64,000 bases of DNA, from the NCBI RefSeq assembly GCF_021869535.1, contig NW_026262679.1:69750001-69814000 (forward strand). The letters run 5' to 3'. A program made the translations under genes and the position numbers. The notes below the pieces were generated by a model. It did not search any database and was not told the origin of the DNA. It saw only the letters and a list, made by a program, of their open reading frames with translations. Numbering within the stretch: position 1 is the first letter of the stretch; each line of letters starts with the position of its first letter. This document shows, in pieces, positions 32,411-60,785 of this stretch. The stretch comes from Mytilus californianus. Taxonomy: Eukaryota.

Positions 32411-33536
32411 CAATCTATCTATTTATTCAAGTTATTCGACCCCGTGCAGTACTGAAAGACATAGGCTTTTGGGTAAAATAATTTCTCGTTACGTTTGTTA
32501 CTATAACACGCAGGCACACAATTTGTGCAACAAGAGCAACATTATGCCATATGAAAACAACAAATTGATCAAGCAATATGAGAAAAAGAGAAAGCTACCC
32601 TCTATCTCTACTGTTGAAACAAGGCGTTTTCAGCATTTGTAAAATGAGTTACGGATAGCACTGAAGTAGAATTAAATTTTCCGAGATATCTTTAAATGCT
32701 TATGCACATTTAAAATGACATTGGCCAAGTTTTCCGCCAATATTTAGTATGCGAATTTATCTCTTTGTAACCTGTTGCATCGAATACTAGTAAAATAAAC
32801 TGGCCTTGAAAATCAGAAATGCGCTGAAAAAAAAACAGATTCGCTAGAATTAATTCTGTGCCGTTTTTTACTTTTTTAGTGATACATGTATCGGGGGATT
32901 CCTGCTTAAGTGTTCATACAGTGCGGGCTTTGGCATTGGAGAATTACAACATGATAAAAGTTTAATGTGAAGCTCTTAAACAAAATCTTCATATCTAGTT
33001 TCGGTTATCTCCCTTTGACCCAATATCTTGAATATTTTCCAAATCATTTTCAATTTTTTAGATAAACGTAGAATGATCAATTAACATTCAAATAATCAAA
33101 TAAATTTAAAATGAACACTTTTATGTTTTAAAAGATCCCACAACATATACCGCATGAAGGCAAACTTGTATTATATATTGAAACTGGTTAGTAAAGTGTG
33201 TTACTTGGTAAATCTTACTAAGTGTGCGACATACGACTTGGACAGATTTTAAGAAATTCTGTTTTAGAAAACCAAGGATTTGTACAAATTCTTGAGAAAA
33301 CTAAAGGTCAGCAAATGTATGAAAAAAAAATAATACAAAAAATAAGAAATCAATGTAGATTTTATTATTAATTGAATGTTTACTGCTTTTTTTCACTGCA
33401 TTGAACCTTTATTTACGCTGGGCGTTACCATTTTCCTTCCTGCACTTCTTATGGCGTTATTGTATAAAATCTACTCCAGTCGTCAACACTACATTATACT
33501 ACTGTACGACATGATTCCATACTCGATGGTTGAGTA

Positions 33537-34484
33537 AAATTTTAAATGAAAATTGAGAATGGAAACGGGGAATGTGTCAAAGAGACAACAACCCGACCAA
33601 AGAGCAGAAAACAGCCCAAGGCCACCAATGGGTCTTCAACACAGCGAGAAAATCCCGCACCCGGAGGCGGGCTTCAGCTGGCCCCTAAACAAAAAGGTGT
33701 ACTAGTTCAGCGAAAATGGACGTCACACTAAACTCCGAAACATATAAATGAACTAAAATTTAAAAAACATACAAGACTAACAAAGGCCAGGGGCTCCTGA
33801 CTTGAGACAGGCGCAAATTAAACATGTTTTGTGAGATCTCAATCCCCCCCTATACCTCTAGCCAATGTAGAATAAACAAACACAAAGCAGTACGCACAGT
33901 AAAACTCAGTTAAAAAGAAGTCCGATGTCAGACTAGGTAACAGTTGAAGCTAAGCAAAATGACAATGACACATAAATTAACAAGGGACTAATAGCAGTTA
34001 CTGACATGCCCGGCCGTTCCAGACCTCAATTAAACTGATTGAAAAATTATGTCTTCATCATATGAAAATCAAGCACAATCCCTCCCGTTAGGGGTTTAGT
34101 ATCATACCATCATAAAATATACGAGAAGAACATAACCCGTATCATGCCAACAACTGGTTTTTGAATAAATGTGTTTATTTCCGATGCAAAGACCCTATGC
34201 ATAGTGAATCAATATTAATTCTAAAAAATGCCATCTTTAATGACCTGACAACAGTATCGTAACTATATACCTTCTGAATTAGTTTGTTTAAAGGTTTGGT
34301 TAGCTTTTGAGGTGAATGACGACATTTTTGTGCTTTGTATAGAATACTATCATAAAAGATTGGATGTGAAATACCTGAACGTATAAGATGTCTGCACGTT
34401 GATTTATATTTACGAATGATGTCCTTGTACCGATGATAAAGTTTAGTAAATGTTTTGACAAGTTTGTGATATCGAAAACCCTGG
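33537..34484 (-). mobile_element. Penelope-like retroelement, 5'-truncated, with intact 3' end and target-site duplication
   Basis: Homologous to 30184-31120 (QGFRYHKLVKTF...); GGTTGAGTA at 33528-33536 is repeated at 34484-34492. Confidence 0.8.
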
Positions 34485-35157: not shown

Positions 35158-37552
35158 TCACGAAAGGTCTTCTAACTTTGGTCTACGGTGAACTCCAAGA
35201 TTATCCCATCTAATCCAAGACAAACGTGCTTTAAGATCTGAAATAATAAAAAAAGGAAAAATAATATCTATTGTTTTTTTTTTATCGTTCCCTTTACAAC
35301 GATTTCGTCGGTTTATTGTTTGTTTCAACATCTATGCCGTCACATAACGGTCAACTGTTAATTATTCATTTCTACACAATCTGATTAAAATCAGCTCCGT
35401 ATATATTATAGAGGTATGTTTAATATTCCCGGAATTTATTTCACACAAGGGCCATTTTTAAAATCTCTGTCAATCTTTATTTCTATTTATTATATCACTA
35501 CTCCAATAAGTGTGCTTTGAAGTTCTAACAATATCATGTCTTATTTCTAAACAGATCACCTGGTTTGCAAAATAATACAGGAGTCGATGCTTATCAAAAT
35601 GCTTTCAACAGTAACATATAGCGCGGAAAATATTTTTTTGGGGGTAATATGTGGTATTGTTAACAAAAAAGTTTAAAAAAGCATATGATATAGACTTTTT
35701 AATACTAGTATTCTGAATCAAATTCCAACAGATGTCAATGACCTTTTTGAAAAAAGGATGTTGTGTGGATTTGAAACGGATATTTGATCAAAGTTGTCCT
35801 CCATTTTTAGAACGCAAATCACCTTTTTACAATGTCTACTATACAACTATTTAGGAAGCCACTACTGCTCAAACTACCTTGTTATCCGTCGCTTTAGATC
35901 AGAATTAATCAACCTTTATGTGAAATTATATGTAGTATGGACCATGGAAGTATTATATTGATATAATACTTTCATGTATGGACGAATAGAAAATAAATAG
36001 TTAGTAGAAATATAATGCTTTAGATTTAATATTGATATAAATCTCCTACTTCTATACTATATGTTCTTTCATTGTTATTGAAAAAAAACATTCGAAAAAT
36101 GAATATATTAAATGAAAGATTAAAATTATATAGGAGACTTGCAAAAAAAAAATATCTAAATTTTTTTTTCACTTGCATTAAATAAAACTTTTCTCGAAGC
36201 TTGTGACAATAAATAATTCAAAGAATCAACTCATTGTTTGTAAGTTCGTGCAAATGTAATAATGATTCGATCCTTTTGAGACATATTTTTTAAGAAAAAG
36301 TTATATTTTAATTCGGTTTGGCTGTGAACATTTACATAATATTTCATTGACTGCACTGGAATTTTGTTCTAGTTAAAAGAAAAAAATCACAAATCACAAC
36401 AAATGAAACAGCACGGCAGGTACATTACTTAGGATTCTTGTAAATACGAAAAGATAAAATATGACATTTGTTTAATGTTAAAGACTTTCAAGAATAACGG
36501 GATATTTTCCTGGTCTAAGAACAGAAGGCACCACAACAAAAAACTAAAAAGTCATTTTTACTGGTCATTTGAATGATTAACCATAGCGCAAATACAGAAT
36601 AAATATATTTTGTCTCTTAGAAAAAATAACATAATGAATATATAATTCATCTTAGCAAAGACAGACGGGTAAAGGTTAGTATGTTCAAACATTCTTTTCT
36701 GATGCTTTAAATAAAAATAAATATATCATTATCAAGTAAAAGGCAAGTAATTCTTAAATCTATAAAATTCGTCCTTGTAAGTATAAGAAATGATACCTAT
36801 CTGCTTTAAAACATTTTAAAGACATACCCCAACAGTATATCCGTCAATACTGATATTGAAATAACATTATTTTTTTTAAACTCAAGACAAAAAAAATAAT
36901 TCTAGAGGTATACTTTTTACAACATAGAAATTATCTTTTAAAAAAAGATACTACAAACTAAATGCAATGGTATATACGTCAATGCGTAATTTTCCGTCTA
37001 ATAAAAGTTGATTAATGAGTTCTTACCACTAGTGTTCCAAATAGCCCTTCTTCTTCCACCAACACCAGATTTTAGAGATTGCTCAAGAAAGAGTAGTGGA
37101 TCTGTCTCCTTTGATTTCAACATGTCTCTAAGTAAAGCAATATAAGCAATGGCCAAGCGCAAAGTGTCTATTTTAGAGAGTCGTTTTTCATATGGAAATG
37201 TTGGCACAAATGAACGGAGTTCTTCAAAAGCAGAGTTTATACTCATCATTCGCTTCCGTTCCCTAACATTAGCTGCTTGCCTTTGAGGCTTCATGCCGAA
37301 TCTATAGTCAAAATAATCTCTACGGGCGTCGAAACTGTCCACAAAGACATCGTCCTCACCAATACACATTGTTTGGTTTGGTCCAATAAGACCCTGCATT
37401 TGTCCGTCGTCGATTTGGTGTTTGTACATTCCCGAGTCGGTAGACGTGTCGACAAGCAAAGGGCCGGAATCACAGCAATCGTTGACTACATCTTCTTCAA
37501 ACGCACGGCAATAGTTGTAAAATTGTAGAGGAATGTCTCTTTGTACATCCAT
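35158..37552 (-). CDS. Fer2: bHLH transcription factor, Fer2 / 48-related-2 type (PTF1A/FERD3L relatives); exon 1 37027-37552, exon 2 35158-35237; 201 aa
   Basis: b[59 protein letters not shown] matches the recalled Fer2 signature ([13 protein letters not shown]) better than PTF1A (SKVDTLRLAIGYI) or Fer3 (SRIETL). The ORF track reads through the donor G|GTAAGA at 37025-37026. Exon 2 after TTATTATTTCAG gives the conserved [15 protein letters not shown] motif, then stop TGA at 35158-35160. Confidence 0.9.
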
Positions 37553-40112: not shown

Positions 40113-43100
40113 TCAACTTGCTTGCTATGTTTGCTTGGATGTTTGCAAACAATAGGTAGGCGGAGTTTCAGTCTGTTTTATATATACGAGGATTTGATTG
40201 GACAATAAAAATTGACATGCAATGAAGTTAATGTTTATTGTCCAATCAAATTCCATTATATAGTAAACAGACTGAAACAGACTACCTATTTTTTGTTTAC
40301 AAACATCCAAAAAAACATAGCAAGCAAGTTGATCAAAGGTTTGCTTTGCATGCTTTTATAGAAGAGCTGTAAGCTTGTTTTTTTATTGCCAATAAGATGG
40401 TTATCAAGAGTGAAAACTTCTATATATTCATTCTGTGTAATGATAGATTATTTGTCAATTTTCCATGTTGTACTGAAAAATACCTCTAAAATTGGTTTTC
40501 AAAGGTTATAAAAATAACCACCAGCAACGTAAGTCAACGATAGCAATTCATAATGTTCAGCATTGTTTCTCTTTCTACTAAACACAACATCAAGTAATTC
40601 CCTTGCTTGTTGGTTTACTTTTGTCGTTTTGTTTTTGTATTGCACAAAGTATTCACATAAAGCACCTAAATCATTAACTTTGACTTTAATACCGAAGTAA
40701 AAGGAAGATTTTAATCTAAGATTAAAATTGATCAAATTTTATCGATTTGTATAAGAAAAAGTAAAATTGACTTCTTTTTTTATCCAAGAGCCTTATTGGC
40801 ATTCAGAAACGCTTTTTAAGCCTTTGTGATCTTTGGGACACGGTAAACTTTGTTAAGACGAGTCCATATCGTAACACCAAAGTTAGTGAGTAAATCTGTT
40901 AACAAATTGTGTCATTTCGACTTTGTAAGTTGAAAAAATGAAAGAAAGCTTGATTCTTCAGTAATGATAAAATATTTTGACACTAGGCAGATAGAAATTA
41001 TTCAGTCACATTCTGGCATAAAACATTACGTCTCCAATCGGCCTGAACACCTATATACATCCCGCTCAACCGAACGGATGTCCCAATCTTCTGACAGGCT
41101 GGAGATTATATTTTTTATATCCCAGGGAACTTCCATGGTCATTTAAAAAAAGAATATTCATTACGGACAATAATTTTGCATTACGAAAAAAATTAACGAA
41201 TTCGACATGATCATGAGAATGGGAACAAATAGAATGTTGCTGATGTCAAGAACGTTTTCTTTTGAGAGATCGTGCTCTGATAACTTAGAAAATATTGATT
41301 GATTCGATCAATGTTATTCTAACATCCGATGTAAAGGCTACACGCATGTATATTCAAGCTAAGAACAGAAAGATGGAAAGGGATGTGACCGGACTAATGG
41401 CATCTAATTTTGAAAGACAAAGAAACAATAGTGGAAGTTCGACGGGATCGTATATTTTGCCTTGCTAAAGATTTATTTTTATAGGAACTTTCTTGTTATT
41501 GCTACCTGGTCTCAGCTACCTGGTCTCAGCTACCTGGCATTTATCTTTATTATCTTACTACGCAATTCTAACTCGACAATTTCAATAAACATATACTACT
41601 TTATAATAGTATTTCATTTCAGATATATCATCAAATAGAAGAAATATCAAACCAACCAGTCAACAAGATAATATACACATCAAAACTCCGTTGCTTATCT
41701 TCATTTGTATGCGAAAATTATATCATGGATCTTCTGACCCATATTGATATTTTGTTTTCGAATAGTGATCAAATGTACAACGTAACCATTTCTCGTAATA
41801 TTCAAATATCATCCCGGCTTATGTTTCTTGTAATGAACATATGTACTCTAACTATAGTGGTCAACATACCCTAGATTTAATATTTCAGTTCTTTGATTCA
41901 GAAAGTCTTAATCCTACAAAGACCGCTACACGAATTATAAGATTTGTGTCATAAGATTTTTGTTTTATGTGACACTCTTGCACACACGCAAAGATGAATC
42001 TTTCAAAGATTGTAAACAAAGGATAATATTAACATTATTGTTGCCTTTATTTAACATTGCTAATTCTTTTCCCTTTCAATTGTTGTTAGTTAACAATGGA
42101 AGTAGTTAACGTAATCTTTATTATTTTTCTTTCTGAAATGAAGTTATTCAAAAAGGGCAAGAATAAAAAACATGTTAGACAAGAACTGGGTCAAACGGTG
42201 TAATATAATACTTCGTTTATCATGCAATATTGGATGAGTTGAGAAGGACAATCTATATGGCTTTGAAATTGTTTATGATATTTGTATCTTCTCTTTCCTC
42301 CCCTTTTAACATCTTCGTTTGTGAATTCACCCATTTTTGGACGAACCACATCCATTCATTTGCATTTGATATTGTACACGTGTATACAATTGAACCCATA
42401 ATGGAACAATGTGATTGGACGAAGCTAAAATTTCAACTAAGATAAAACATTGCTCAATCCTCAATACAATCTAATAAGATTCTAAAAAATAGATTATTCA
42501 CTGTTTTGAAAAATGTATACACAGTGAAATTTTGTACTATAGTTCAAGTCGTATACCGGCATTAAGGTATAGCACGTTTTAGAACCATCGAATTGTGTCC
42601 GTCTAGAAGTAAAACACTGTGTTGGCATTTAAGTGCAAGTAAAATTAGGACTTTCTATTCACGTCCTTTGTTTAAAATTTACATCAACTATGAATACAAA
42701 AATGTGTGGAGTATACACCAATGGTACAGCAACCAAACGACACACAAACCTACAGACATCAACACAAGTGATTCGAGTTAGACATTATAAGTCCGTGGCA
42801 AGTTAGAATATATAAGTACGTACGGAACCGCTTCTCATAAGCTTTAAATCGTCTCGGGTCTAAACTAGGCAGTAAACTTGGCCAATGGGACTATATAGAA
42901 ACGATCAAATGTCTTACAGCAACGCTAGAGTCTTAAATAAACAAAGTATATGAAAAGGTAGCGACAACCGCACATGGATGTTGTTTACATATTCATCTTT
43001 TCTAAATACTTTAAAAGATAAGGAAATATCAAATGATTTAATAAATACATTCAGTAAATATAGGTAAAATACATATAACAGGATAAATACATTAGAGTTG

Positions 43101-43154
43101 CCATATCAGATATCTTTTTACCAGAGAATTTCTTAATGTCTTAGGATTAAGATG

Positions 43155-45451
43155 TTATGTAATCTGTTGTATCAGATGTTTATACTCGTCTTGTAAAGAT
43201 GCAGACATAACTCGCATACGATCAAATAAAATATAATCACGAAGGTGTCTTGATAGTCTCGAATTCACTAAACAAAGAGTAGCAGGATTTGGCATCGTTC
43301 TGTTAGGAACTTCACTTCCGGTTAAGCCAATGGCGGTATAGACTTCACAAATCAATACACCCAAGGGTTTGAAAATTTCCTCAACCTTTCCTGCAATGGC
43401 TGATGTACTACGATGCAAATTTTCATCTACCTCAATTCGTTGGAGTACTGAGTTCATTTCAGTTATTATGTGGAAGTGGTTAGTTAATTTCTCGTGTATC
43501 TGAAATAAGTTCGTATTTGAGGTAAAATTCATACAACCGTTGACATTATTTTTCTAACGACTGTTCATATAAAAAAAAAAGACAAAATAAAATTCGATAA
43601 ATTATATAATTTTTTTATTGAATACATCTAAGGCAGGATTGGTTTTATTTGGTTGTATATTGTAAGGTTGTTTTTTGCTTATCTGGCTCATAAGATCAGT
43701 TTTAACTGTTATAACCAATTTTTGTTCTTCGTATTTTTTTCATGAAAAAATAAGTCTTTTTATAATCAGTTTTCCGTAATGGTATGTGTTTTTGTTGACA
43801 TGGTGTTCGTAACATTGACAAAACCAAAATAGAGGAACAACATAACTTTTTACAATTTCATCTGTCGAGGAACAGCTAATGCTGACCGAATGTCCAGGAA
43901 CCTGGGAATAGATTTCGATTATCCTCCTTCCAAATAGCAGCTGCTGCTTATAAAAGTAAAACTAAAGTCGGGTTGAAGATTAGACTTGAACAGTAATATT
44001 TAACAGAGTTATATTGTTAATTTTAGTAGAATGCTGCCTATATGTTTAACTCTTTAACATCCAATACATACACCCGACATTTAAAGTGATCACTATACCA
44101 AATAACATTATTTCCAAATATGACCTTCTTGGTAATTCATTTAAATCTTCGCTTTCAAAACAATTAAGCTAAGCTAAATCTGTATTATTTTCAATTTGTT
44201 TCTTTCAACATAAGAACATTTGTTTTTGCAGGCCAAATACTATGGCTGTTTTTCCTTTTTCAAATTTAACATATATATATTGATCTTGTCCCCCAAAAAA
44301 GTCTATGTTGTTGAGACGTTTATTTAGTTTGATAATTATTTCTTATTCTTCCTACAAGAACAGATAACAAAATTTAGAACTTTAAAAAGTTTTGAAAGTA
44401 TTTATTTATGCAAACGAATCAATATCTGAACAAGATTTGACAGGAATTTGTCCTAATGTCCTAACCAGTGATGTTTTTGACTATTTTTCTTTTTTATCGT
44501 TTTTTTTTCTGTCTAAAAATTCCACCTATCTACACAAGTTGGGGGAAGATAAATGAAAATAGAAGGCGTCTTATTCAAATTATCATTGATATTGTTTTAA
44601 TCCAAGATATTAAACGATTTTTTTTTCAAGTCCGTATAACATCGATATGCCAAACTAAAATATAAGCAATACAAAATAGCTATACTTACGGTTAATGAGT
44701 TTCTATAATCTAGACTGTCGACTTGAATAAAATTCATACAACGAGGATAATTTCTTAAATGCTGTAGACCATACAACACATGACTTCTTCTTTCCTATAC
44801 GATGAAAATTACAAGTACAGTTGAGAATTCTTTGACAAAAATAAGAACATATATTTGATAGATGTGAAAAAAACTAAAGAACTATTTAATATCGGTATAA
44901 AAATAGGTACCATTCAAACAAAACTCGCCGTTGCTTACAGCATGCTCGAAGTACTTAACCTGCTGATATATATAGGAATCGTGTCTTATTACACTTTAAT
45001 ATAAGCCACTGAGTTTAAACAGCAGTGCAGAAATACCCTATTTTTCACAATGTCATAACACACAAACTCATTCGCCATCACCTTTTCCAGTTTTTTGTTG
45101 TGTTTTCGGATTAAATAATTTAAAAACTACGCAATTAATTATTCAATGGTGAATGGTCTTGTTAGATTAAAAAGATGATGTGTTATTCCTACAATATACA
45201 TTCAATTTGAAGAACAAGATTGAAGCAAACTAAATGATAAACTCTACCTACAATAAACATATCAAGGAGTTCAGTTGTAAGTGAATTAATTGTCCCAGCT
45301 TTCTTTTGACAGTTTGTCAACACAACACGTAGGCGATCGTCGTCATCTATCGGTTGGAATGGTTCCGAAGGCATTGATACCTGCAAACGACTGCTACCGC
45401 CACAAACATGTCGGTTCGCAGTGGCGAGTACCATCTGAATAATTACTATAT
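43155..45451 (-). CDS. Uncharacterised, probably secreted protein; candidate long-chain four-helix cytokine (IL-6/LIF/CNTF/Upd-like). Exons 45252-45451, 44690-44761, 43155-43499; first coding exon unresolved
   Basis: Acceptors TATTTTGTAG (45452-3), TCTACAG (44762-3), TTATTTCAG (43500-1); donors ATT|GTAGGT and ACC|GTAAGT. Phases 1/0/0 give one frame: xIVIIQMVLATA-NRHVCGGSSRLQVSMPSEPFQPIDDDDRLRVVLTNCQKKAGTINSLTTELLDMFI | HLRNYPRCMNFIQVDSLDYRNSLT | IHEKLTNHFHIITEMNSVLQRIE...SAIAGKVEEIFKPLGVLICEVYTAIG...SRLSRHLRDYILFDRMRVMSASLQDEYKHLIQQIT*. The gene model is well supported; the family call is inference. Confidence 0.75.
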
Positions 45452-45599
45452 CTACAAAATAGAGATTATCGTTACAAGCGAGAGTCAGGATTAACCCGAT
45501 ACATCAGTAATACCGAAATACTAGTATCTAAATGAGTTATCGGCATTTCCATGATAAAGAATATTTTTACAAACTTAGGTCAAAAGTGTTTCACCTATC

Positions 45600-45610
45600 G
45601 GAAATTCCCC
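45600..45610 (-). promoter_or_regulatory. NF-kB/Rel consensus site GGGGAATTTCC
   Basis: Perfect GGGRNWYYCC match about 150 nt upstream of exon 45252-45451 of the cytokine-like gene. Confidence 0.5.
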
Positions 45611-47130
45611 TATTGTAATTACATTCATTACATGTATGTTTCATTAGAATCCGTGATTTTAATTGGCTGACAACAATCGCGAGGCACTCAAATATCATAT
45701 TTTATTTCCGTATAAAACACAACAGCTATGACTGCAAGTGCTATCCGTGACAATGTTAAAATAATACATTGAAAACATACGAAAACTACATATAACTCTT
45801 AATTTTTCATGGTTGTATCATAAAAATGTATAATCATAAGAATTGAATGCTTCTTTTTATAATTCTATAGGGTTGTAAAAGCGTTGATCATGCGCACATT
45901 TTCAATATGAAGCTCTTCCGCGCTTCATACAAAATGTGCTTCAGTCAACGCTTTTACAACACAATAAAAATATAAAAAGAACCATTCAATTCTTAAACGA
46001 TTTTTGATTGCTTCCTGAAGTGATGAAACATGACTAGCGAATTTGACATGAATTCATTTACAAGTTTTGCTCTAAATAGAATATTTTGTCAAAAACAGAA
46101 GGCAAAATATGCTTTTTTTTTGGCTCGCTTGCTATTTATTATTCATGTAAACGTTTTATTCAAAAGAATAACTAAAACAATGCACAGCAATGAAAGTCCA
46201 AAATACCAATATAAAACAAAAGAAATACCTAAGATTATAGTCTCTAGATTATAGTATATAGTATCAAATACTTCATGTAGATATGTAGATTTCTTTGTAA
46301 AACAAAAATACAACATTGAACGATATTTTTGTAGGTTTTCCTTTATTTATATACATAAAAAGTAGAGCTTTTCCGATAAGTATAAATATTGCATCTTTTC
46401 CTATATTGCATTTTAATTTTTTTTTCTTCGCGTTTGATACGCACTAGACAGGTTTTGAGTGAAACGATATTTGCAAGAAAGCAAAGGAGAGATGCACAAG
46501 ATGGTGAAAATGGACAATGAGTGCTTACTGCAGAGCTGCAGGATTTGGACGAAGTTATACCAATGTTGCTGAAATATTTTGTACTATATTATTAACGGGT
46601 TTTAAGACATTATTTGATGTTTAACTGACTTTTTTTTCGAAAATTTATTAAAACTGTAGGATGAATTAAATCTATGAAGGAAACGATCATGTTTTATCAC
46701 ATGGGCTCTAGCTTATGTGTCGAACACTCTGTTAAACCACAGCCTTCTTTCTAAAAATGTCTTAATCGAATCAGGAATATGACTGTTATTTAGATGTCTT
46801 ATTTGATTCTTTGTATATTACGATAATGTGATATGATTGCCAATTAGACTACTATTCAACAGAAAACGAAGGACGTGAATGTACTCAACTACGGGTCATC
46901 ATATATGGCCTTCAACAATGAGCAAAAACCATAACGTATAATTAGCTATCCAAATGTACTGGCATGACAAAATGTGAAACAATAGAAACAGGAAAACCAC
47001 CTGCATGATTGAAGTTAAAACAAAAAACGAAAAGCAAATATGGTAGACAGCAACCAACGATAACCACTGAACTACAGGATTCCGACTTTCGAATGGCACA
47101 TTAATAATGTTGAGGGGTTAAACAGCCTAA

Positions 47131-47341
47131 GGGCCTCATTTACCGAGTGTTCTAAGTTGTTCGGTTACATTGATCACTAGCCTGTCATCACTGAGGTTGT
47201 GTGTTCAAATCCCGGATTCCAGTTTTCCAGGTCGGTGGTTCTCTACGGGTACTCCAGCTTCTTCCACCGATAAAAACTGGCTGCCATGATATAACGCCAA
47301 GAGTGCAAAAAGTTGCGTTAAACACCAACAATCAATTAATC
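47131..47341 (+). mobile_element. tRNA-derived SINE (degenerate, internally deleted)
   Basis: A-box-like ACCGAGTGTTCTAAG, B-box-like GTTCAAATCCC, conserved-core-like body, CAAT-rich tail. Confidence 0.65.
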
Positions 47342-50300
47342 ATAAACAGTTTTAGAAAAGCATGATATTGTACAATAACAAAATATAAGTATCTACAAGA
47401 CGTAGGACCATAAGTGTTCATAACTGTATAAATATTAAAATTTAGATATTTTTAAATTTATTACTAACAAAGTGTGGGCACAGATCAGCGACTCAGTGGA
47501 TAGTAATTGTTAAATTTGTGTTATTATGTTTGACAGTGTTATCATCACCGAGTTTATGTATTGGTCGTGCCCCTCCAGATGTTGATGAGCTATTTCTTTG
47601 TCTTTCATGGAGGATTCTATGTAAAACTGTGTTCAACTGTGACGGTCATCTTGCCTTCTGAGATAAGAAGCAAAGCTCAAAATTGGCGTTGTGCATGGTT
47701 CGACATAAGTTTGTTTTTAAAACAACTTGCCCTTTTTGCAAGTGACCACTTGTCTGAAAGAGACAACTTTCTGAAATTTTGTACTTGCTTATGAAATTTC
47801 TATACTGCCATTTATACAGACGTAAAATGATGTAAAATTAGCTCTATGTTTTTCTGCCGAAAAATTTCCTATATAGATGTTATTTGGGAATATTAAATGT
47901 TCTCCATCCGAAGAAAATGCTGGGAACAAGACTATTTTCCAAGGTCCATGTGCTTTACCTGGGATATACAATGTATACTGATGTGTCTCTTGTATATTTT
48001 CACCCATAGAAACCCTTTCCTTAAATAAAGTAGAACTATACTTTTATTGTTTATCTGAAAGGAAATGTTTTCTGCCAGACTCCCAAGGCTTGGTTGAAAT
48101 TAAATAAAATATTTTTGTTTTCACATAATATAACATTAATTCTGATGAAATGGTAATTCAATTTATTTGTTCATGATTATTGGTTTCTAGGAGAGAGAAA
48201 AAGAAATGGCTTATTATGTGAAACATAACAATTTAATATCCTGAATATAGTATTTGACTGAATTTGAAATGGAAAAAAAGTAATGCAGAATCAATTTTGA
48301 TTAAAAATTTCGTTCTGTAGGGGAAGATATAAATAGTGAACCTTGAAGCAAAATGTTGTTGAAAATAGGAGCATTCAGTTTTTACATCATAAAATAAGAA
48401 TAGAGCGCCGCTGTTAGTACCACAAAGTTAGATTTAACAAATGAATTAAACAATGTACTTTAATTATAGAAGTCAGTTAGGCCTTGTGAGTTTCGTCCCT
48501 TTACATAATAATGATGTATAAATGAATGACCATTTGTACTTGGGACTCTTCATTGCTAACACAACAATGCTACTACCGATAAAGACAATATGTAAGATAT
48601 CATTACAATTGATAACAGTGAAGAAAAAGTTTTTTTTAAAGAATTATCTAAATTTACCAGCTCTATCAATAGCATCATCGAAAAATTTAGGATATTATAT
48701 CCCGTATGTATTAAGGTTTCTACGTGTACAGCCAAACTTCCAAACCAAATCTTTGAACATATGAAATAATTCAGTAAAGGTTTCGAGTAATTTGTACTAG
48801 CAAAATCCCCGAAGTATTCATTTACTATGTATATATACTAAGTAGATTACGTACATTGACATCTAAAACGTCAATATGCAGACTACAGACAAGGATATAC
48901 CGCGAACGAGAAAGGAAACACTCGTAAACACAACGGAGATGAGGCAAAAGGAAAGTCACCGTTTAAAATCAAAGTACTGAAGTACTGAACATCGGACGAC
49001 CGCAAGTTCTTGTGGATGATCACAAGCACTTCTCTCAGAAAGTAAATCACATCTCTATACCTGAAAGTGAGGTTAATGTACAGAATTTTTTTTCTGAGAC
49101 AAGTTCGTGAGTGGATTAAGAAAAAATTCATGGAAGCCATAGATTTGTTGGCAATTTACACATGGCCTGGGCCGTGATATTCGAATTTTATCCTGAGCGT
49201 TAGCTTTTATTTCTTAAATAACCGCTAGAAAAAAATGTGTTTAATTCTTTAAAATCTCAACTCCAACATTAGCCATTTTTTATTTGCATTTTTTTTCTCG
49301 TAATTAAGCTACCGCCAAATCCACAGTTGACATTTCGTAACTATGGAGCCGCCATGTTGACTTGCCGAAATCAGTAAATGTGCGAATAATGCAATAGAAT
49401 AGAAAATAAAACAAAACCTGCCTCAAACTCCATTTTAATGCAATATTATCCGAATTTGGATGATTCACGTAACAGAAAAACCTTCAGCTTTAGCGTTTTC
49501 ATTCGTATGACGTCATGTTTTGAAATGACCTTAATGCGTCAAAATCATTAATGGACTTTCGCGGAATTCTATTTTATTTTGATTTTGTACATTTCTCCGA
49601 GCTCTAATGCATTAATTATTTTTGTTATGCATCAGAATAAGAATAAAGGTTCTGTAGGTTTTTTTTTCAATTGCAATTTTAGACACAGCGAAATCGGCAT
49701 AGCGTTTGCACATAGGTTACGACACATGTGGATTTACGTCGGAGGTATATTGTAACAGCCATTATTATATAATTAAATTTCGGATGTAACGCGTCTTCTG
49801 ATTGGCTGACGTTGTTTTGTTTATCAGCTCATAGACATAATTTTGTCATGTGACCGTGACGTCATCAACGTTTTTTCATGGTTTAGTCCGGTTTAAAATG
49901 GAATTTAGAATTTAATTATGAGAAATGACTGTAATATTTTTTCTGTCTATTCGAAATAACATAAAAAATGTACTGCACACTTTAAAATAACCCGCTACGC
50001 GGGTTATTCAGTGTGCACCACATTTTGATGTTATTTCTTCATAGACAGAAAAAATATTACAGTCATTCCTTAAGTACATCTGAGTCTGCGCTAAGTATAG
50101 ATATATCGAGAATTTCATTACGGTGTTGTTTACAACGCGAAAGAAGCACGTCATATTAGAATGATGAATAAATGACAGGGAATTCAACCTCACCGTAATA
50201 ACTATAATATTGTAGTAATATTATATTAATATTTGTATATAACAGTTACATGTATTATATAATTTTCATCCATTTGTTTATCATTATATTTTACTATTCT

Positions 50301-52077
50301 AATAATAGTGCAGTGCAAGTGCATGGTGGACACTCTTCTGTAATAATTCGATTTTTCTAATAGATTGGATTTGAGCAGGCATTCATATTTTCCCGCAAAA
50401 CGTTCTTGAGATATTCTTCCGCATGCGTTAACACAATTTTTCTGTACGTGTGCATAGATATTAATGATTTTTTACTTATATATATATTTCTAACGTCAAA
50501 ACATTTTCATATTATTAATTTATGTTCTAAGAACAATATTTTTTATGAGTATTCATTGAAGAAATGAATTTATAACAAGCTATAAGGAATGTATTTTTGC
50601 ACTCGATAATGTCCGCGTATTTATAGATCGGTTACCAGTCAAAAACGAAAGTTACGTAAGTAAAAATCACTGTGGCAACAATACATCGGAATCAATGCCA
50701 TCACGGTCATCGCGATGTAAAAAGGAAAATTAGAAATAGACAACAGCAAGTCGTCTATTTTGCCGTATTGAATTTCCCGTGTGAAACTGAAATGTCAAAA
50801 TCTTGAACAAGACAATTACTTAGTATTGTTGTTTATATTGAATTTATCTAAAATCTGTTCGCCTAGTAAATTTTTGGTTATAATTAGAGAATTCTTGATT
50901 ATTTTGAACAAAAGTATCATCCTGTTAACGGTAACAAGTGATTATTTTTTCTTCAATTAAATGAAATTTAGACGGATCTTTTCTGAGTTGGCCATAAACT
51001 CCGATTAATTACAATACAGGAACAAGTCTGCTATTAATTGCCGAAAGGTATACTAGATGGTGTCAATAAGAAAATTTACAGTTTTAACCATCTTATCACA
51101 GCTTCAGTAAGTACATCTAGCATATCTACCTTTTTCATTACAGAAGAAAGCTACAAATAAGTAGCAGCAAAAATTTGTTTAAATAAGAAACTTTTATTTG
51201 ATAAGTTTGTGTGGAAGTGTACTGTGGTGTAAAAAGTTATAATTGTTCAAATAGAAAAAAAAAACACCAAAGCACGAACGTTTTATTATCCAACGATCTA
51301 TTACCATTCTAAAATAATTAATTTCATTATTGTCATCGGCTATTATTTTTAGGGTACTACTATTTTTTTTGGGGAGTCATAAACTATGATAAGGATCTTC
51401 ATCTGTTACTTACTTGTACATCTTTGGCGTTCAAATATTCTGCGTTGAGCGTTCCTTGACGAAGGCAAATCCAGAAAAGCACTTCGGGGCTTACAGTTTG
51501 TCATTTTTCATTTTCTAATAAGTATTTCAATTGTTAATTGTTTACAAGTTGAATTAAAGGACAGACAGATTACTTGTTGATCATTTACTGGTAGTCGGGA
51601 TGAAAAGATATTTGACATTTTTCAGTATTAAGTAGCAAATAAATAGTAGGGAAGTACTTGGATTTTTTTTTCTTATCTAGAAATATGCTTTTTATTAAGC
51701 CGTTTAATAATTTCTAAACTATTTTCAATAAACAATTTTTCAGTTTAGCATGGTTTTTATGTTCTTTATCTCCTGCGCGCTAGTAATTAATGTTGATTTT
51801 CTATCAAATCTATCTTTTTTTCTAATTTGCCAATAATGAAACAGTGTGTCAGGCAACAACTAGTGTGCATAGTTGTCGATTATTTCAGACTTCCGTTACC
51901 ACTAGATGCCTTTTGATTTTTTTTACAAGACTCTAGTACTTTAATAATACTTTGTAATACATCATTTCTAATAAAGAAATATTTAACGTGTATTTGTTCA
52001 TGACGCAAGCGCTGCTGGATCAATTTAATGATTCGAAGTTACATTTTAAGATCTTCATAAAAAAAATAAGGAAATCT

Positions 52078-52460: not shown

Positions 52461-54955
52461 CGAATTTGTCTATTTTTACTGAAGAGTTAAATTATATAAC
52501 TATATAATCCGTATACTTCAGATTTTAAATATTTTCTTTGTTTTATTTTTCACGCAGTTGACCAGACTCACGCGATTACTGTATGCCATATGCTAAAGAC
52601 ACTTGCTTATTGTTTAAGAATCCTTTACTTTGGCCATGCATTCGGTTAAATAGATAAAAACCGAACGTAACGATATGTTTGAAAGCTAATTTCAAATTAA
52701 ATTCAATCATTTTGAAATATTAATCATTATAGATGACTTACATATGGAAAGTAAGTATCCTCTCTTCGTGAAAGTCATGTTTGGAACGTTGTTCATCATA
52801 AATGGTAAAAAAAATGATGTAATATAGATATTTAGTTATGAAAATTATATAGCATTAAGTTTGAAAAATTCCCAAATGTTTTGCATAACTATTCAATTGA
52901 TTGCTATTTAACTACGATAAAAAAATACGAAGGGAGTTTAGCAAGATGTATTGACAAATCTTGTTATATGAAAAAAAAAGACCTTAGGGTATTTTAAAAG
53001 TATGAGTGGTTAATTCACACGGAAGAAAATATGGCCATCTTCGTAAAGAATTAACCAATAAAAGTTAAGCCTCAATAGACATCGTCCTTTTGCTACATTT
53101 ATTACCTACATTCATCGATTGATTATTTGCGGCAGGTAATTGCGACCCGTTTGTAATTGATTAAAAGTACAAGGATATACATGTATCTACGGTAATTGTT
53201 AACATCGCGAGAACCACATCTGAAACATTTATGGAGGTGTTAAAAAGTACAAGCATTACCAAAATTTTTTTATTGTGATTCGGGTGATAAAAATAACGGT
53301 AATGCATGCTTAAAGGTTTTATTTATGGTTTATTTTTAATTATCACTTTACGCATTAGCGCAATATGGTAATACCGAGAATGGCTTTTAGCGACTATTTT
53401 TATTATTAATTCTACTCTTTGTCAATACAAACAAATAAAAAAGAAACTTCCAATCCAATTTTTCAGGTCCTTTATATAAAAAATGATTAGCAAAATTAGT
53501 GTTTCTCTGATCTGTTGTATATGTCACATCTTTTATTAACATTTATGAATAAGTTTGTTTTGTATATTCTTTGATCGACTGAAGAATAATAAAATTGATA
53601 CCAGAGCTTACAATAATAACTTATGCAACAATCAGTGAAAGAGCCATAGATTAATTCAGCTAACATAAGAAGGAAATGCAAGGAAATCTATTGAAAGTTC
53701 TATATTTTGATGCGTTTTAAACATCAGTCCAAAAATATGGTTCTGTTTCCTGCCTCTCCGTCTAGTCTTAATTTTCTTGTCCATGCCATAACACACTTTA
53801 TGGACATCTTTGGGTAATTTGCCGTTAAAGTCCAGAACATTTCCTTTCCATTCTATGTAAAAACATTTTTTTTTAGATAAAATTAGTTTACCTACCTACA
53901 ATAACCATTGGTAAAGATGATAATAACAATAGTACTTTAGTACTTTTATTATACATTTCATATCATAATCATATTCACACTTTTCAATGATGATATAAAC
54001 TTTATTAACCTTAAAATTAACGTAATTATATTTTTAATATTATGTGTCCTTGAGATAAGAGGATATCTTCTTACTGGACTTTTTGTGGTGTGTTATCTGA
54101 GTGTTTACAAACATAATATTTTGATAGATAATATCTCTTTGAGATAAAAATTACATAAAGATTTGCCCCTTTCTTTATTTTTTTCAAACAATTATTTCTC
54201 CTAAACGTTTGATACTTTCGGACTTCCTATATGAAATGATGGTTTGATTGCCAATGAGACTAATTTCCATCAGAGTCCAAATGACGTGGATTCAAGCAAC
54301 TTTATGTCACCATGCGGCCTTCAACGTGGGCAAAACACATAGCGTATAGTGAGCTATAAAAGGTCCCGACATGGTAAAATATGAAATAACAAACCAACAA
54401 CATGATTTAAGAAAAAAGATCAAACGAAAAACAAAAATGACAGACAACAACCACAGCAACCACTGAATTACAGGCTCGTGACTTGATAAAGACACTTTAA
54501 ATGTGATAACCGAGTGAGCGCTCAACCTTCCCCAACATGGGGAGTGTTGTAACAGCACTACAATAATACAAACTGTAAAAAGTTGTTGAAAATGGATTTA
54601 CTTATCAGATTGGTATTAACCACAAGAAACAACTAACGTAAGGAAAAAACTAGTACAAAGGAACTAGCAAACTAAATTATATCGTGTTCACACTATGAAA
54701 TCTGCTCCCGGGATAGTTAATTCGAATTAATTACCCCAGTTCAACTTCATAAAAAATTAACCCATTTTGGTGTTTTCTCTCTAAAAAAAAATCGAAATGT
54801 ATCCGCCAAAATTGTATCCCGCATCTGTCCATTGTACTTGTTTACATTGTTTGAATTACAGTTGCATTATTTCAAAATCTGGATTTTTTTCCCCGCACAC
54901 CTGACCACTTCGGAGGAAATTTGCATCAACCACTCGCCTTGTCGTGTTTGCGAAT

Positions 54956-55478
54956 GAATGTAGGACAGAAAGTCACAGGACAAAAAGTCACAGACAAAAA
55001 GTCACGGATAAAAAGTCACAGGACAAAAAGTCACAATTTAGTTTTGAGATTATTTTTCCTTGAAAAAGAAAACACTTATTTAAAAAAAAACATATTTGTA
55101 TTTTTCTTGAACTTTAATATAAACATCAACTTTGTAATTAAGATTTATTTAATAAATATCAATAATGATCAAATAATTGTTAAGAAAACAAAATGTCAAA
55201 GGGGGTTGGTACTTAAACGGCTTCATGGTGCCAAGAAATATATCCTTTGCATGATTAAAATTTAATAAATTTTCATTTATCAAGGCTAATGAACAATTTC
55301 CTAAACTGTCAAATGAATATATGTAATAAAAAGTAAATATTTCAAGATCTTTCTCTAATATATTCAAACAATTGTCAACAAATTATTTGTGACTTTTTGT
55401 CCTGTGACTTTTTGTCCTATCAAATTTGCGACTTTATGTCCTGTGACTTTTTGTCCTGTGACTTTCTGTCCGTTTACC
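54956..55478. mobile_element. Mutator-like (MULE) MITE, 523 bp, 9-bp TSD
   Basis: TTTGCGAAT at 54947-54955 and 55479-55487; both arms are built of inverted arrays of GGACAAAAAGTCACA. Confidence 0.85.
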
Positions 55479-56240
55479 TTTGCGAATAACGTCACAGTAC
55501 ACAAATTGCACCCATTTTGCAAAATAAAAGCGCAACGGAAATCTAATAGGTTTTCTTTATAGGGACTAAACAATTCGTTTTTTCATCATTTGTCATTTTG
55601 CAGATCTTTCAGCATAGCTATATATACTTTAAGATACACAAAACGATCATATCAAATCAAGAGATGAAGTCTCCAATGAAGAAGTAAAATTTATGGAAAA
55701 TCCACAAAAAGTCGACATTTAAAATGAGCAATTATAATATGTCCCAAGCAATCATTTCTTTAAAAAAAAGACATAAAGCATGGAATATTATCAAATTGTT
55801 CTAAAAAGTGTGAAAAAAATTGAAATAAAAATTGTGTAAACTTAAAGCATGTTTGAAACTCATAACAGAATCTTGGCTCGTGGGAAGGTCGGTTCAAAAC
55901 CATTTGCCATGATTCATTATGAATTCAAAATTAAACTTGTGAAACCGTTTATAACAAATAAGTCCGGGATACATCTACAAAAAACAGGATGGAAACTGAT
56001 GTGTGTTTCTAAAATAAACGAAGGTGAAAAGAGTGTCAAAATAAGTGCAATTTGGGTACCCTCACGTAAGTTGAATTAATTTCACTACCATGCATATTAG
56101 AGAAAAAAATCGTAATAGACATGTTAAAAAGTAAAAACAACTGTCAAAATAGGTTCATTTTGGGTATTCCAACGTTAAATGGGTATTCTGAGTGGAGGAG
56201 TAAAGTTCCTCCTGTGTCTTGTTTTCTATCCCAATATAGA

Positions 56241-56470
56241 TGTTATAAAGTTCACCGCACTTTATTACCGTATCATCTGTTACAGTAATTATAATTAACA
56301 GATCAGCAACTCTCACATGTCTGCACGTTCTTAAATAAACATAATTAAATAGATCAATTGAAGTTCTTATACACATGTTGTCATTCTGTAGTCTGACCAT
56401 CAAACGATGTACTTGTTAATAAATTAGTTATAGAAACTGGATTGTATTATTATATAGCAAATATATTACA
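56241..56470 (+). repeat. 5' LTR (230 bp)
   Basis: TGTTATA...TATTACA; 226/230 identical to the 3' LTR. Confidence 0.95.
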
Positions 56471-56475
56471 CATTT

Positions 56476-56486
56476 TGGCGACGAGG
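56476..56486 (+). other. Primer-binding site TGGCGACGAGG, complementary to the 3' end of tRNA-Ser(GCU)
   Basis: Lies 5 nt after the 5' LTR; eukaryotic tRNA-Ser(GCU) ends ...CCUCGUCGCCA (recalled). Confidence 0.8.
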
Positions 56487-56531
56487 AAAAAAACTGAATA
56501 TTAAAATAAATGTGAATTTCTACACGTAACA

Positions 56532-59500
56532 ATGCCGACTTACGGGAAATTAGACTCTTTTGATGAATCCGAAGATTGGACACAATATGTAGAACGTATG
56601 TAACATTATTTTAATGCTAATGAGATAGACGAAGAAGACCAGAAAAGGGATATTTTCTTAAGTGTATGTGGGAAGAATACCTACAAATTAATAAGGGATT
56701 TATTAGCACCAGCCAAACCAGGAACGAAATCACTGGCCGATTTAACCAAACTAGTGAAAGACCACCGAGATCCAGTACCATCAGAAATTATTCAAAGATT
56801 TAAATTAGTAGAACAAGACACAGCGATGAGTCAGTGAGGACATTTATTGCAGCACTAAGAAGTCTGACAGAACACTGTAATTATGGTGACACGTTAAACG
56901 CGATGTTACGAGACAGGTTAGTCGTCGGAATAAAGAGTGACCGCATACAGAGGAGGCTGTTAGCAGAGCCGAATTCAACTTTTGACAAGGCATTGGAAAT
57001 TGCTACCGCTATGGAGACTGCTGAGAAGAACGCACAAGATATCCAAGCGAGTGGGACAAATGCAACAATTCAGAAAGAAGTCAACAAAGTTTCAAAATCC
57101 TACACGAGAAACAACTCTGGAAATTCGGAACAAGGAGATTGTTACCGGTGTGGAGGAAATCACCTAGCCGCCGATTGCAGATTTAAGGAGGCAAAATGTC
57201 ACAGTTGTAAAAAGAAAGGACATATAGCAATAAAAATGCCGTCACAAATCTGGCAATGGGAATTTAAGTGAAAATCACAGAGAGTTTAAATCACGTTTTA
57301 AACCACGTGCTCATTTCATCGAGCAGGATGAAAGTAGCGAAAGTGTAAGTGAAAATGAAGTTTACTCAGTTTTTCATTTTGGAAATAAATCTAATGAGGC
57401 ATATAAAGTGCAAATCAATGTGAATGAATGTGAAATAGCCATGGAGATAGATACCGGAGCGTCAGTTTCTATCATGAGCGAGGATACTTACAAGGAATAC
57501 AAGTCTAAATTCAGAATCGAACCGACAAGTGCTAAACTCCGAACATACATGGGAGAGCAGATTCCTGTAATAGGACGTGCAATCGTCAATGTCAATTACA
57601 AGAAGGAAAGCGCAAAATTGCCAATACATGAATTTACTTGGCCGAGACTGGTTGAACACACTCCAACTGGATTGGAAGGATATTTTCTCCGTCGTTGGAA
57701 GTGATAATCAATCGAGTGATTTAAATGTGATCTTGGAAGCAAATAAGGAAGTTTTCAAAGATGAAACTGGAACTGTAAAAGACATGAAAGCCAAGATTTA
57801 TGTTGATGAGAGTGCCGTACCGAAATATTTCAAGGCTCACCCTTTGCCGTATGCGTTGAAGGATAAAGTGGAGATGGAACTTGAACGTCTTGAGAAGGAG
57901 GGTCAAATTCAGCAAGTGGAATTTTCCGACTGGGCCGCTCCAATAGTACCTGTAGTTAAGGAGAACGGATCTATTAGAATTTGTGGTGACTACAAGGTAA
58001 CCGTTAATGCCGTTTCGAAGTTGGATAATTATCCGATTCCTAAAACTGAGGATTTATACGCAACGCTTGGAGGAGGACAAGAATATACAAAATTGGATTT
58101 AAATCAAGCATACCAACAAATTGAATTTGATGAGGACAGTAAAAGGTATGTGACTATAAACACGCATAAGGGTTTATTCAGGTACAATAAACTTCCGTAT
58201 GGTGTAGCGTCCAGCTCAGGTATTTTCCAGAGAACACTTGAAAATGTTGTTCAAGATATCTCCAATGTTTTGGTTCGAGTAGATGATATACTGATAACGG
58301 GTAAAACAAGTGAGGAACATCTAAGTACTCTTTCTGAGGTTTTGTCTAGATTCAAGAGAATAGGAATTCGGTTAAAGAGACAGAAGTGTGTGTTTATGGC
58401 CGAAGAAGTTGTTTATCTGGGATTTAAAATAAACAAACACGGAATCTATCCAGTGAAGAGAAAAGTTGAGGCGATAGATAAAGCCCCAAGTCCGACAAAC
58501 GTGACAGAATTGAAAGCTTATCTGGGAATGTTGAACTATTACAATAGATTCTTACCAAATTTGTCTCACTTGTTAAAGCCGCTACATGTACTTCTACAGA
58601 AAGACACAAAATGGAGTTGGGGAAAAGAACAGGAAAATGCGTTCATAGAGTCAAAACAGCTGTTGAAATCCGCATCAGTGCTTGTACATTTCGATCCGAA
58701 AAAGACATTAATCTTAGCATGTGATGCATCTCCGTATGGAGTCGGGGCCGTACTTTCGCATAAAATGGACGACGGCAGTGACAAACCAATAGCTTATACA
58801 TCTCGAACACTTACATCAGCAGAGAAGAATTATTCCGTTCTTGAAAAGGAAAGTCTGGCCATAATATTTGGTATCAAGAAATTTCATCAATATTTGTATG
58901 GACACCCCGTTACAATCATAACCGATCACAAGCCGCTTATAGGTTTATTTCGAGAAGATAAATACCGACAATGGCCGCATCTCGAATTCAAAGGTGGGCA
59001 CTGACTTTAGCTGCATATGAGTACACGATTGTATACAAAGAAGGGAGTCTGAATGGTAATGCGGATGGACTAAGTAGACTACCGCTGAAAACAAACATTG
59101 AAAAGACGCCAACGCCAGGTGATACTATATTATTAATGGAACATTTAGCCACTACGCCAGTTGATGCTAAACAAATTCAAAAGTGAACACGCAAGGACAC
59201 AATACTGTCTATGGTGCTTAGATACATTTTGAATGGATGGCCGTCAAAATGTCCCAGTGAAGACATAAGACCGTATTATAGTAGAAAAAATGAACTGTGT
59301 AGTCAGGACGGATGCATATTGTGGGGAGGAAGAGTAATTATACCACAACCAGGACGTGAGGCCATGTTAAATGAATTACACCAAGGACATCCAGGGATTA
59401 CTAGAATGAAAAGTCTAGGAAGAAGCTATATATGGTGGCCGGGAATGGACAATGACTTGGAATTAACTGTAGTAAACTGTTACAGTTGTCAGGAAAACCG

Positions 59501-60467
59501 AAAATTACCAGCAGAAGCACCGTTACATCCCTGGGAATATCCGAGCCATCCGTGGTCAAGAATACATATAGACTTTGCAGGACCATTCATGAACAAATCA
59601 TTTCTAATTATGGTTGATGCGTATTCAAAAATGAGTAGACACACACGTCATGAATTCTACAACATCCGAGGCTTCGATTGCAAAACTTCAACAAACGTTT
59701 GCAACACATGGATTATGTGATCTCATTATTAGTGATAATGGAGCCGCATTTACTAGTAAGGAATTCGCCGATTATGTGAAATTAAATGGAATTGAACATC
59801 GCACTTCCGCGCCGTGGCATCCAGCTAGTAATGGTTTTGCTGAACGAGCAGTTCAGAGTTTCAAAGAAGGTATCAAAAAATCAAAGAAGGAACTGTCCAG
59901 GAAAAGTTGAAACGTTTTCTTTTCAACTACCGTATAACGCCACAAACAACGAAAGGATTGGCACCATCAGAATTGCTGATGAAAAGGAAATTCAAGTCAC
60001 GTCTAGATTTATTTTTTCCAAATATCGAGAAGCGAGTTCAGGAGAGACAACAAAAACAAAAACATTATCACGACAAGAAATCTGTGAACAGACAAATTAA
60101 TGTAGGACAGGGAGTATTTACCCGAAATTTCGCCATTGGTTCAAAGATTAAATGGATTCAGGGAGAAGTTCTTAAACAATCAGGACCACTTTCATTTCAT
60201 ATCAAATTGCCAGATGGACGTGTCATTCGTAGACATATTGATCACATCAGAGTACGAAACTTTGATTGCACAAACAACGAAAATGAAGAAAAATGTGACA
60301 ATGACAGTGAATTGTTTGAGCCAGAAATAACTATACCGATAAGTACTCCTGAGACCGAACAACCGCAAATCGAGAAACCGTCAAACATGACTGAACAAAT
60401 GGAACCACGCTATCCGAAGAGAATAAGAAAAGAACCATCACATTTTAAGGATTTTGTGTTGAATTAA
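56532..60467 (+). pseudogene. Disrupted gag-pol polyprotein
   Basis: ATG at 56532 (MPTYGKLDSFDESEDWTQYVERM*), premature TAA at 56601, TGA at 59184, and frameshifts near 56805, 57235, 57630, 58965, 59635 and 59895; fragments appear as ORFs 56834.., 57408.., 57577.., 58971.., 59211.., 59650.., 59907.. Confidence 0.92.
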
Positions 60468-60785
60468 ATTGTTGATTTATAAAGAGGCATAATAATCCTC
60501 ACAACCGTTTGAAGTGCATTAAGTACTTCGCAGTGCATGTGTGTACATATCATTTAGTGTAAGAAATAACAACAAGACCAGTGCGAACATTTTTATTTTA
60601 TTTTCTTAGTAGGACATTATAGTTTCAGTGCAGACAAACTTTAACGAATGAATCTTTGTGATCTGACATTTTTATTTGTTTTCAAACTGATATGGACTTA
60701 TCAATCAGTAGCCCGTGAAAAGACATTAATTTTCTGTAATTGAGTTAATTTGTTTTTAATTTGTTTTTATCTAAGGCCGGAGAAG

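Follow-up and report, generated by a model that had tools for sequence, protein, structure and literature searches.

In the 64,000-nucleotide window of the Mytilus californianus genome analyzed here (contig NW_026262679.1, positions 69,750,001 to 69,814,000; all coordinates below count from the first letter of the window), the minus strand carries a four-exon protein-coding gene, which is spliced as predicted. Its product is a candidate molluscan secreted ligand of the long-chain helical cytokine type, a reading to which we assign about an even chance. This cytokine-like reading is based on three concordant language-model searches, on the match of an ESMFold model to a granulocyte colony-stimulating factor (G-CSF) cluster, on the architecture of the loops and on the gene structure. 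Membership in a named cytokine family is not established, since the profile test failed, and that the protein works like a cytokine is the best mechanistic guess. The annotation so far reads only 'uncharacterized' or 'unnamed'.

The first-pass annotation, which was made from the window sequence by eye, had predicted that three fragments (45451-45252, 44794-44690, and 43499-43155) join in frame at GT-AG sites. Exactly these junctions were found in transcript contigs assembled from public RNA runs of a close relative, organism A. A 743-nt contig from run X2 and a 354-nt contig from the RNA-seq run X6 skip precisely from 43499 to 44690 and from 44793/4 to 45251/2, and the skipped segments end with CT..AC on the plus strand, corresponding to GT..AG on the minus strand. 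The exons of the window differ from the contigs of organism A by about 3%. At the one site checked (43160 T>C), the final Thr codon is changed to the Ala that ends P0004, the corresponding protein of Mytilus coruscus. The sequence of the window is therefore that of a mussel closely related to M. coruscus.

Exon 2 (45252-45451, donor GTAGGT, phase 0) encodes the remainder of the leader, which ends with VLATA, the N-terminal Cys segment and predicted helix A (approx. 45341-45252). It is followed by exon 3 (44690-44794, acceptor TATAG, donor GTAAGT, phase 0), both junctions of which are contained in the X2 and X6 contigs. This exon encodes the A-B connection with a predicted mini-helix (approx. 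44788-44750) and a conserved P-x-C-M-N motif as well as the first turns of helix B (from approx. 44707). Exon 4 (43155-43499, acceptor TTTCAG), which includes the stop codon (43157-43155), encodes helix B (to approx. 43416), helix C (approx. 43412-43323), the Pro-rich C-D connection and helix D (approx. 43250-43164), and the invariant columns common to the paralogues are located there. A further contig, from run X1, contains intron 2 and part of exon 2 in unspliced form (44891-45343), due to either intron retention or genomic DNA in the library.

The first-pass annotation had placed the start of the gene at 45451, which turned out to be a true exon boundary, but a further 5′ coding exon, in two alternative forms, lies beyond it. 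The DNA of Mytilus galloprovincialis next to exon 2 is almost identical to the window and contains no ATG, so the first four residues of the RefSeq model P0001 of that species are encoded elsewhere. The upstream exons were revealed by this different start of P0001 despite the same DNA beside exon 2. The ATG at 45434 was rejected as a start codon, as it would leave just M-V-L-A-T-A ahead of the mature chain, and the frame is open upstream of it without a start codon.

One of the first exons, exon 1b (52742-52799), is reached by the X2 contig, whose match to the genome breaks off precisely at 45451 and which carries 50 more letters; these fall on 52771-52742 with 3 mismatches in 30. The exon comprises 58 coding nucleotides (19 codons and 1 nt), ends with T directly before the donor GTAAGT (phase 1) and encodes an n-region with K-R, followed by the beginning of a hydrophobic core. 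Its translation corresponds to the N-terminus of P0004, the exon and its donor are also kept in M. galloprovincialis, and a TATATAA box is located ahead of it (52851-52845). The other, putative exon 1a (53896-53908), was assigned for the species of the window by alignment to the M. galloprovincialis model P0001 and by the intact open reading frame (ORF). It consists of ATG and 10 further nucleotides, encoding M-V-I-V and the first base of the next codon, with the donor GTAGGT in phase 1. In the M. galloprovincialis locus (L001), the gene starts 1.5 kb upstream with ATGGTTTTTATAG followed by GTAGGT (L001:10001-10013), and the aligned counterpart in the window (53908-53896) is ATGGTTATTGTAG followed by GTAGGT.

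All introns are of the GT-AG type with the phases 1, 0, and 0, the phase-0 introns being located after helix A and inside the start of helix B. The first exons are situated 7.3 kb (1b) and 8.4 kb (1a) upstream of exon 2, and with either of them an intact spliced ORF results (235 and 220 aa, respectively). The intron between exon 1b and exon 2 is much longer in the window (about 7.3 kb) than in M. galloprovincialis (about 0.44 kb). Within 45465-51872, roughly 6.3 kb have no counterpart in M. galloprovincialis; no long ORF is located there, and inverted repeats resembling miniature inverted-repeat transposable elements were found at 45837-45995 and 49921-50070. Ahead of exon 1a, the window has TATTGTTATTA, a degraded form of the TATATAA that M. 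galloprovincialis has at this place, and 12 nt are inserted immediately upstream of it (53909-53945 vs. L001:9975-10000). As exon 1b retains its TATATAA and the box of exon 1a is degraded, M. californianus may rely mainly on promoter 1b.

By a word-index search with exon 4, P0001 was identified as the product of M. galloprovincialis LOC143070684 (isoform X1, 'uncharacterized', 221 aa), which has the same exon joins. Identical joins were also found for P0004, which is about 95% identical to the protein of the window. For P0001 the identity amounts to 83%, and to 89% for exon 3 alone. Altogether, orthologues are present in M. galloprovincialis, M. coruscus and Mytilus trossulus, and the ORF is intact across the four species. 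In the comparison with its M. galloprovincialis counterpart, dN amounts to 0.078 and dS to 0.195. The resulting omega is 0.40; among the exons, it is lowest for exon 3 (0.23). Selection is therefore purifying but relaxed, which is usual for secreted immune ligands. The surrounding locus is colinear with that of M. galloprovincialis for about 28 kb at a nucleotide identity of 70-90%.

In M. trossulus, the orthologue is accompanied by a tandem paralogue (P0002 together with its upstream exon; region L002:6457-13009; 30-36% identity), which has the same orientation and lies about 9.5 kb further upstream. The paralogue shares the motifs R-H-V-C-G-G, T-x-C-x-K-K-A-G, P-x-C-M-N, L-x-C-E-x-Y, and R-x-x-R-x-x-R-D-Y-x-L. 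The cysteines and the helix D motif that the first-pass annotation had proposed to follow through orthologues are both retained among the Mytilus relatives, and the sequence matches are confined to this genus. A trace of the paralogue was found neither in the 10 kb upstream of exon 1a (window positions 54000-64000) nor in haplotype L001 of M. galloprovincialis. Presence/absence variation is a possible reason, and so is a location of the paralogue further away.

A decaying or non-functional locus, i.e., a pseudogene or transcribed noise, was also considered. In the sole RNA run of the species itself (X21), essentially no reads were found at the locus in the 6% sampled, and the degraded TATA box of exon 1a points in the same direction. 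On the other hand, either first exon gives an intact ORF, the splice sites are all canonical, the dN/dS values given above indicate constraint, spliced transcripts exist in a close relative, and the family is retained as two paralogues. On the basis of the intact ORFs, the dN/dS ratio and the spliced transcripts, this explanation was rejected as extremely improbable.

The predicted mature chain after VLATA comprises 204 aa, instead of the about 193 aa counted initially. By inspection, the leader of isoform 1b opens with a basic n-region, which is followed by about 16 hydrophobic core residues and by A-T-A. This N-terminus would act as a signal peptide that is cut after A-T-A, so that the mature chain would begin with N-R-H-V-C. 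The residues A-T-A at positions -3 to -1 are kept in the orthologues, and the paralogue has N-S-A there. The leader of isoform 1a, in which the n-region is nearly missing and position 5 is occupied by Asp, is a much weaker putative signal. Of the five Cys and the one NRT sequon noted in the mature chain at first, the cysteines are all shared even with the paralogue of about 35% identity, whereas the sequon is not conserved and reads DRT in M. galloprovincialis and DRE in the paralogue. The cysteines are placed in the N-terminal segment, in helix A, in the A-B connection, at the end of helix C and in the C-D connection, 8 residues ahead of helix D.

It is quite unlikely, in our estimation, that the protein is instead a type II membrane-anchored or an intracellular helical protein, the leader being either an uncleaved anchor (1b) or too weak for entry into the endoplasmic reticulum (1a). 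The hydrophobic stretch of isoform 1b after K-R has about 17-18 residues, which is borderline for an anchor, and isoform 1a has the acidic residue and lacks the basic n-region as described. However, the small residues at -3 and -1 are conserved, the five conserved Cys suggest an oxidising, extracellular setting, and the language-model neighbours described below are all secreted proteins.

In the EPO, GH, IL-6, G-CSF and LIF genes, the first coding exon is very short and its phase-1 boundary interrupts the signal peptide, and helix A is followed by an intron in phase 0. From cytokine genes, the first-pass annotation had expected a phase-1 intron in the leader and phase-0 introns following helix A, and both were found: each of the two first exons (13 nt for 1a, 58 nt for 1b) ends in phase 1 inside the hydrophobic leader, and the intron after helix A is in phase 0. 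The layout of the mussel gene therefore agrees with that of the cytokine genes. Alternative first exons are also used by LIF.

For the prediction of the fold, P0004 and P0001 were used as proxies for the spliced protein of the window. The alignments for AlphaFold2 contained 7-8 usable rows, and for P0001 the curated alignment A9 was used. The mature chain of P0004 was modelled with a predicted local distance difference test score (pLDDT) of 53 and a predicted template modelling score (pTM) of 0.53. For P0001 with A9, a pLDDT of 60 and a pTM of 0.62 were obtained, with values of 70-86 in the helices and below 50 in the loops. According to DSSP, the P0001 model consists of helices at residues 42-71, 101-134, 136-165, and 191-219, with connections of 29, 1, and 25 residues and a mini-helix (74-86) in the A-B connection. 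The limits of helix A in exon 2 were transferred from this assignment by alignment (residues 42-71, pLDDT about 80). The first P0004 model repeats the pattern of four helices with long, short and long connections. The predicted secondary structure is robust, and the long A-B, short B-C and long C-D connections that had been read from the sequence by eye are reproduced in the models. Four long helices connected in this way, as predicted here, are among the features of long-chain class I helical cytokines.

Three queries were submitted to the feature search of the ESM Atlas: P0001, P0004, and the paralogue P0002, which is about 35% identical and lacks helix A. In the calibration of this search, shuffled sequences reached scores of at least 0.95 about once in 100. 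The first match of P0001 (0.95) is a mollusc cluster of 114 members, 11% of which have the Pfam family IL6. The other sets shown for P0001 belong mostly to Hormone_1, LIF_OSM, CNTF/CT-1, IL11, and IL6/GCSF, together with one arthropod set without a Pfam family, and the neighbours of P0004 give the same picture. For P0002, whose first match scores 0.96, the families are Hormone_1, LIF_OSM, IL11, IL6/GCSF, CT-1/CT-2, IL12 alpha, and IL27 alpha. Across the three queries, the named families are thus exclusively of the long-chain helical cytokine type.

The ESMFold models were also compared by structure. For the P0002 model (pTM 0.64), the best match is a G-CSF cluster, with 123 of 139 residues aligned at a query-normalized template modelling (TM) score of 0.70. 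This match needs helices B, C, and D to run up-down-down, so that the C-D connection is a crossover in that model. In an up-up-down-down bundle, no three successive helices run up-down-up. The P0004 model (pTM 0.70) could be aligned to the mollusc cluster with 11% IL6 members with TM scores of 0.68/0.69 over 195 residues, and no vertebrate cytokine cluster is among the ESMFold neighbours listed for it.

Several results weigh against a cytokine-like ligand, beginning with the searches by sequence and profile. By hmmscan against Pfam with expectation (E) values up to 10, no cytokine family was found for P0001, P0002, P0003, P0004, or exon 4 of the window, and phmmer as well as hmmsearch with the family profile gave no cytokine match among the PDB sequences. 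Matches to NANOG, DUF3216, and Tox-ODYAM1 in Pfam and PDB were dismissed as chance rows. In a third of the shuffled controls of the feature search, all matches belong to a single clan. The low-confidence AlphaFold2 models superpose best on up-down-up-down bundles and reach a TM of only about 0.3 to cytokines, and a predicted bridge between residues 92-94 and 188-190 sets the starts of helix B and helix D at the same end. No significant superposition on a cytokine was found for the AlphaFold2 models with Foldseek (PDB and Swiss-Prot entries of the AlphaFold database), VIA-align or the shape search of the ESM Atlas.

In the Foldseek search, the top PDB match of the AlphaFold2 model is G-CSF (1cd9), with an E value of 0.16 and a probability of 0.80, which is not significant. 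In Swiss-Prot, 26 of the 30 top rows are prolactin, cardiotrophin-2, G-CSF, or somatotropin (E values of 0.06-0.24). Helical cytokines and hormones thus occupy the top ranks of the fold search, for which the first-pass annotation had expected LIF, CNTF, IL-6, IL-11, or leptin, but at non-significant E values and with a TM of about 0.3. Together with a root-mean-square deviation of about 20 Å, this TM indicates that the Foldseek matches mirror the order and lengths of the elements and not a superposition.

These results are the basis of another explanation, according to which the gene encodes a secreted, lineage-restricted plain up-down-up-down bundle with a non-cytokine function, such as a carrier, a component of matrix or mucus, or a helical protein with antimicrobial or complement-modulating activity. 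In that case, size, helicity, loop lengths and signal peptide alone would account for the likeness to cytokines. The superposition of the AlphaFold2 models on up-down bundles, the missing sequence and profile link to cytokine families and the single-clan agreement of the shuffled controls all speak for it. It leaves unexplained, however, the conserved A-B and C-D connections of 25-29 residues around a short B-C turn, and scores of 0.95-0.96, which shuffled sequences reach about once in 100, were obtained for two members that are just 35% identical. Furthermore, the ESMFold model of the paralogue matches G-CSF with a TM of 0.70. The AlphaFold2 model has no neighbour in the ESM Atlas, which means that AlphaFold2 and ESMFold disagree on this family, and the model in favour of the up-down bundle conflicts with the ESMFold model. 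Concerning the topology, AlphaFold2 suggests, at low confidence, a plain up-down arrangement and the ESMFold model of P0002 suggests a crossover. On balance, the non-cytokine bundle is a serious possibility that we nevertheless hold to be somewhat improbable.

The cytokine identity proposed in the first-pass annotation is supported in part by the families of the ESM Atlas and the G-CSF match of the paralogue, while Pfam and PDB gave no match for it and AlphaFold2 favours up-down bundles. If the product is a cytokine-like ligand, the 204-aa mature chain would fold into the helices A-D with long crossover connections A-B and C-D, and two disulfides among the five conserved Cys would hold the bundle. 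The ligand would bind a class I cytokine receptor of the gp130/IL6R/Domeless-like type and thereby activate JAK-STAT signaling.

By sequence, the family is a Mytilus-restricted orphan. An exhaustive phmmer search of 1.84 billion representative proteins returned just the Mytilus relatives P0002 and P0003, and word-index searches as well as a profile search with E values up to 10 gave Mytilus proteins and fragments only. Due to this limitation of the relatives to Mytilus, no deep alignment could be built. Full-text literature searches on mollusc helical cytokines yielded no description of this family or of molluscan IL-6/LIF-like ligands.

Among the known systems, LIF and OSM (PF01291) resemble the mussel protein in a putatively secreted mature chain of about 180-200 aa, in four long helices with long, short and long connections, and in the small number of Cys, which is odd in OSM as well. 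In addition, LIF_OSM clusters are among the closest feature neighbours. In contrast to LIF and OSM, the mussel family has no profile match, an extra intron in the first turns of helix B, and AlphaFold2 models that are not superposable on them. The LIF/OSM subfamily has disulfides that connect the N-terminus with helix C and the A-B loop with helix D; the conserved Cys of the mussel family include those of the N-terminal segment, the end of helix C, the A-B connection and the site 8 residues ahead of helix D. In LIF, OSM, CNTF, and CT-1, the motif F-x-x-K at the start of helix D marks the LIFR-binding site III. By inspection of the protein of the window, this motif is absent, so that a LIFR-type site III is not indicated.

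G-CSF and IL-6 (PF16647, PF00489) share the mini-helix in the A-B connection, and a G-CSF cluster is the top structural neighbour of the ESMFold model of the paralogue. They have two local disulfides and five exons, whereas in the mussel gene the five Cys are spread along the chain and the exons number four. The 114-member mollusc cluster of 'hypothetical proteins' (representative of 229 aa) is from the same phylum, has the same length and is the closest or second-closest set to P0004 by features (0.95) and the closest by structure. It is beyond the reach of phmmer and of the family profile, and the likeness is one of features and predicted structure.

The Upd proteins, which are known only from arthropods, are about twice as long as the mussel protein. 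By analogy, the mussel protein may be compared with Upd1-3 as a candidate invertebrate secreted helical ligand for a gp130-like receptor. In the background given by a 2026 survey, the Drosophila Unpaired proteins (Upd1-3), ligands of Domeless, are described as helical and secreted, as driving JAK-STAT, and as beyond sequence recognition from vertebrate cytokines (PMC13203501). A molluscan cytokine-like ligand from the literature is CgIFNLP of Crassostrea gigas, which was reported to bind CgIFNR-3 and to activate STAT and ISRE (interferon-stimulated response element) reporters (PMC8218723). It is claimed to be interferon-like and not IL-6/LIF-like.

Besides the coding exons, a 3′ untranslated region (UTR) of at least 42953-43154 (minus strand) is covered by the X1 and X2 contigs. 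Its 202 nt contain four ATTTA pentamers compared to about 0.8 expected, a number that is reached by only 1.7% of the 202-nt windows of the strand, and ATTAAA is located at 43042. This enrichment of ATTTA is a circumstantial point in favour of the cytokine-like reading. About 6 kb downstream of the gene, a Ptf1a-like basic helix-loop-helix (bHLH) gene was found (35161-37303, minus strand), which is present at the same place in the M. galloprovincialis locus L001. It is 83-100% identical to the HLH part of P0005, an older M. galloprovincialis model named 'pancreas-specific transcription factor 1a', which opens with exon 3 of the paralogue fused to the bHLH exons. P0005 is a chimeric model in which the cytokine-like gene is passed over entirely. 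Short interspersed repeats of the window (16447-16537, 20245-20381, and 33530-33723) recur at several sites of the M. galloprovincialis locus with 83-94% identity.

Should the protein turn out to fold as a plain up-down bundle, the gene would encode an ordinary lineage-restricted secreted protein and would be a warning about language-model look-alikes. A stronger claim, which we consider rather doubtful, is that the Mytilus family and the similar mollusc cluster are true homologues of IL-6, LIF, and G-CSF, and hence the missing ligand of the molluscan module of IL6R/gp130-like receptor and JAK-STAT. In that case, long-chain helical cytokines would have been present already in the bilaterian ancestor, and the alternative first exons, like those of LIF, would yield one form that is secreted and one that is secreted poorly. 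In the 2026 survey, which covers 18 phyla, IL6R-like receptors, JAK, and STAT were found in Mollusca and an IL-6-family ligand in no invertebrate, and the survey suggests that alternative, unknown ligands act in molluscs (PMC13203501). The extent of the phmmer search that returned only Mytilus relatives shows how far such ligands can lie beyond sequence search. With the exon structure, isoforms, orthologues and paralogue now defined, a concrete, transcribed and conserved candidate ligand is available, which makes the question of the missing ligand directly testable in mussels.

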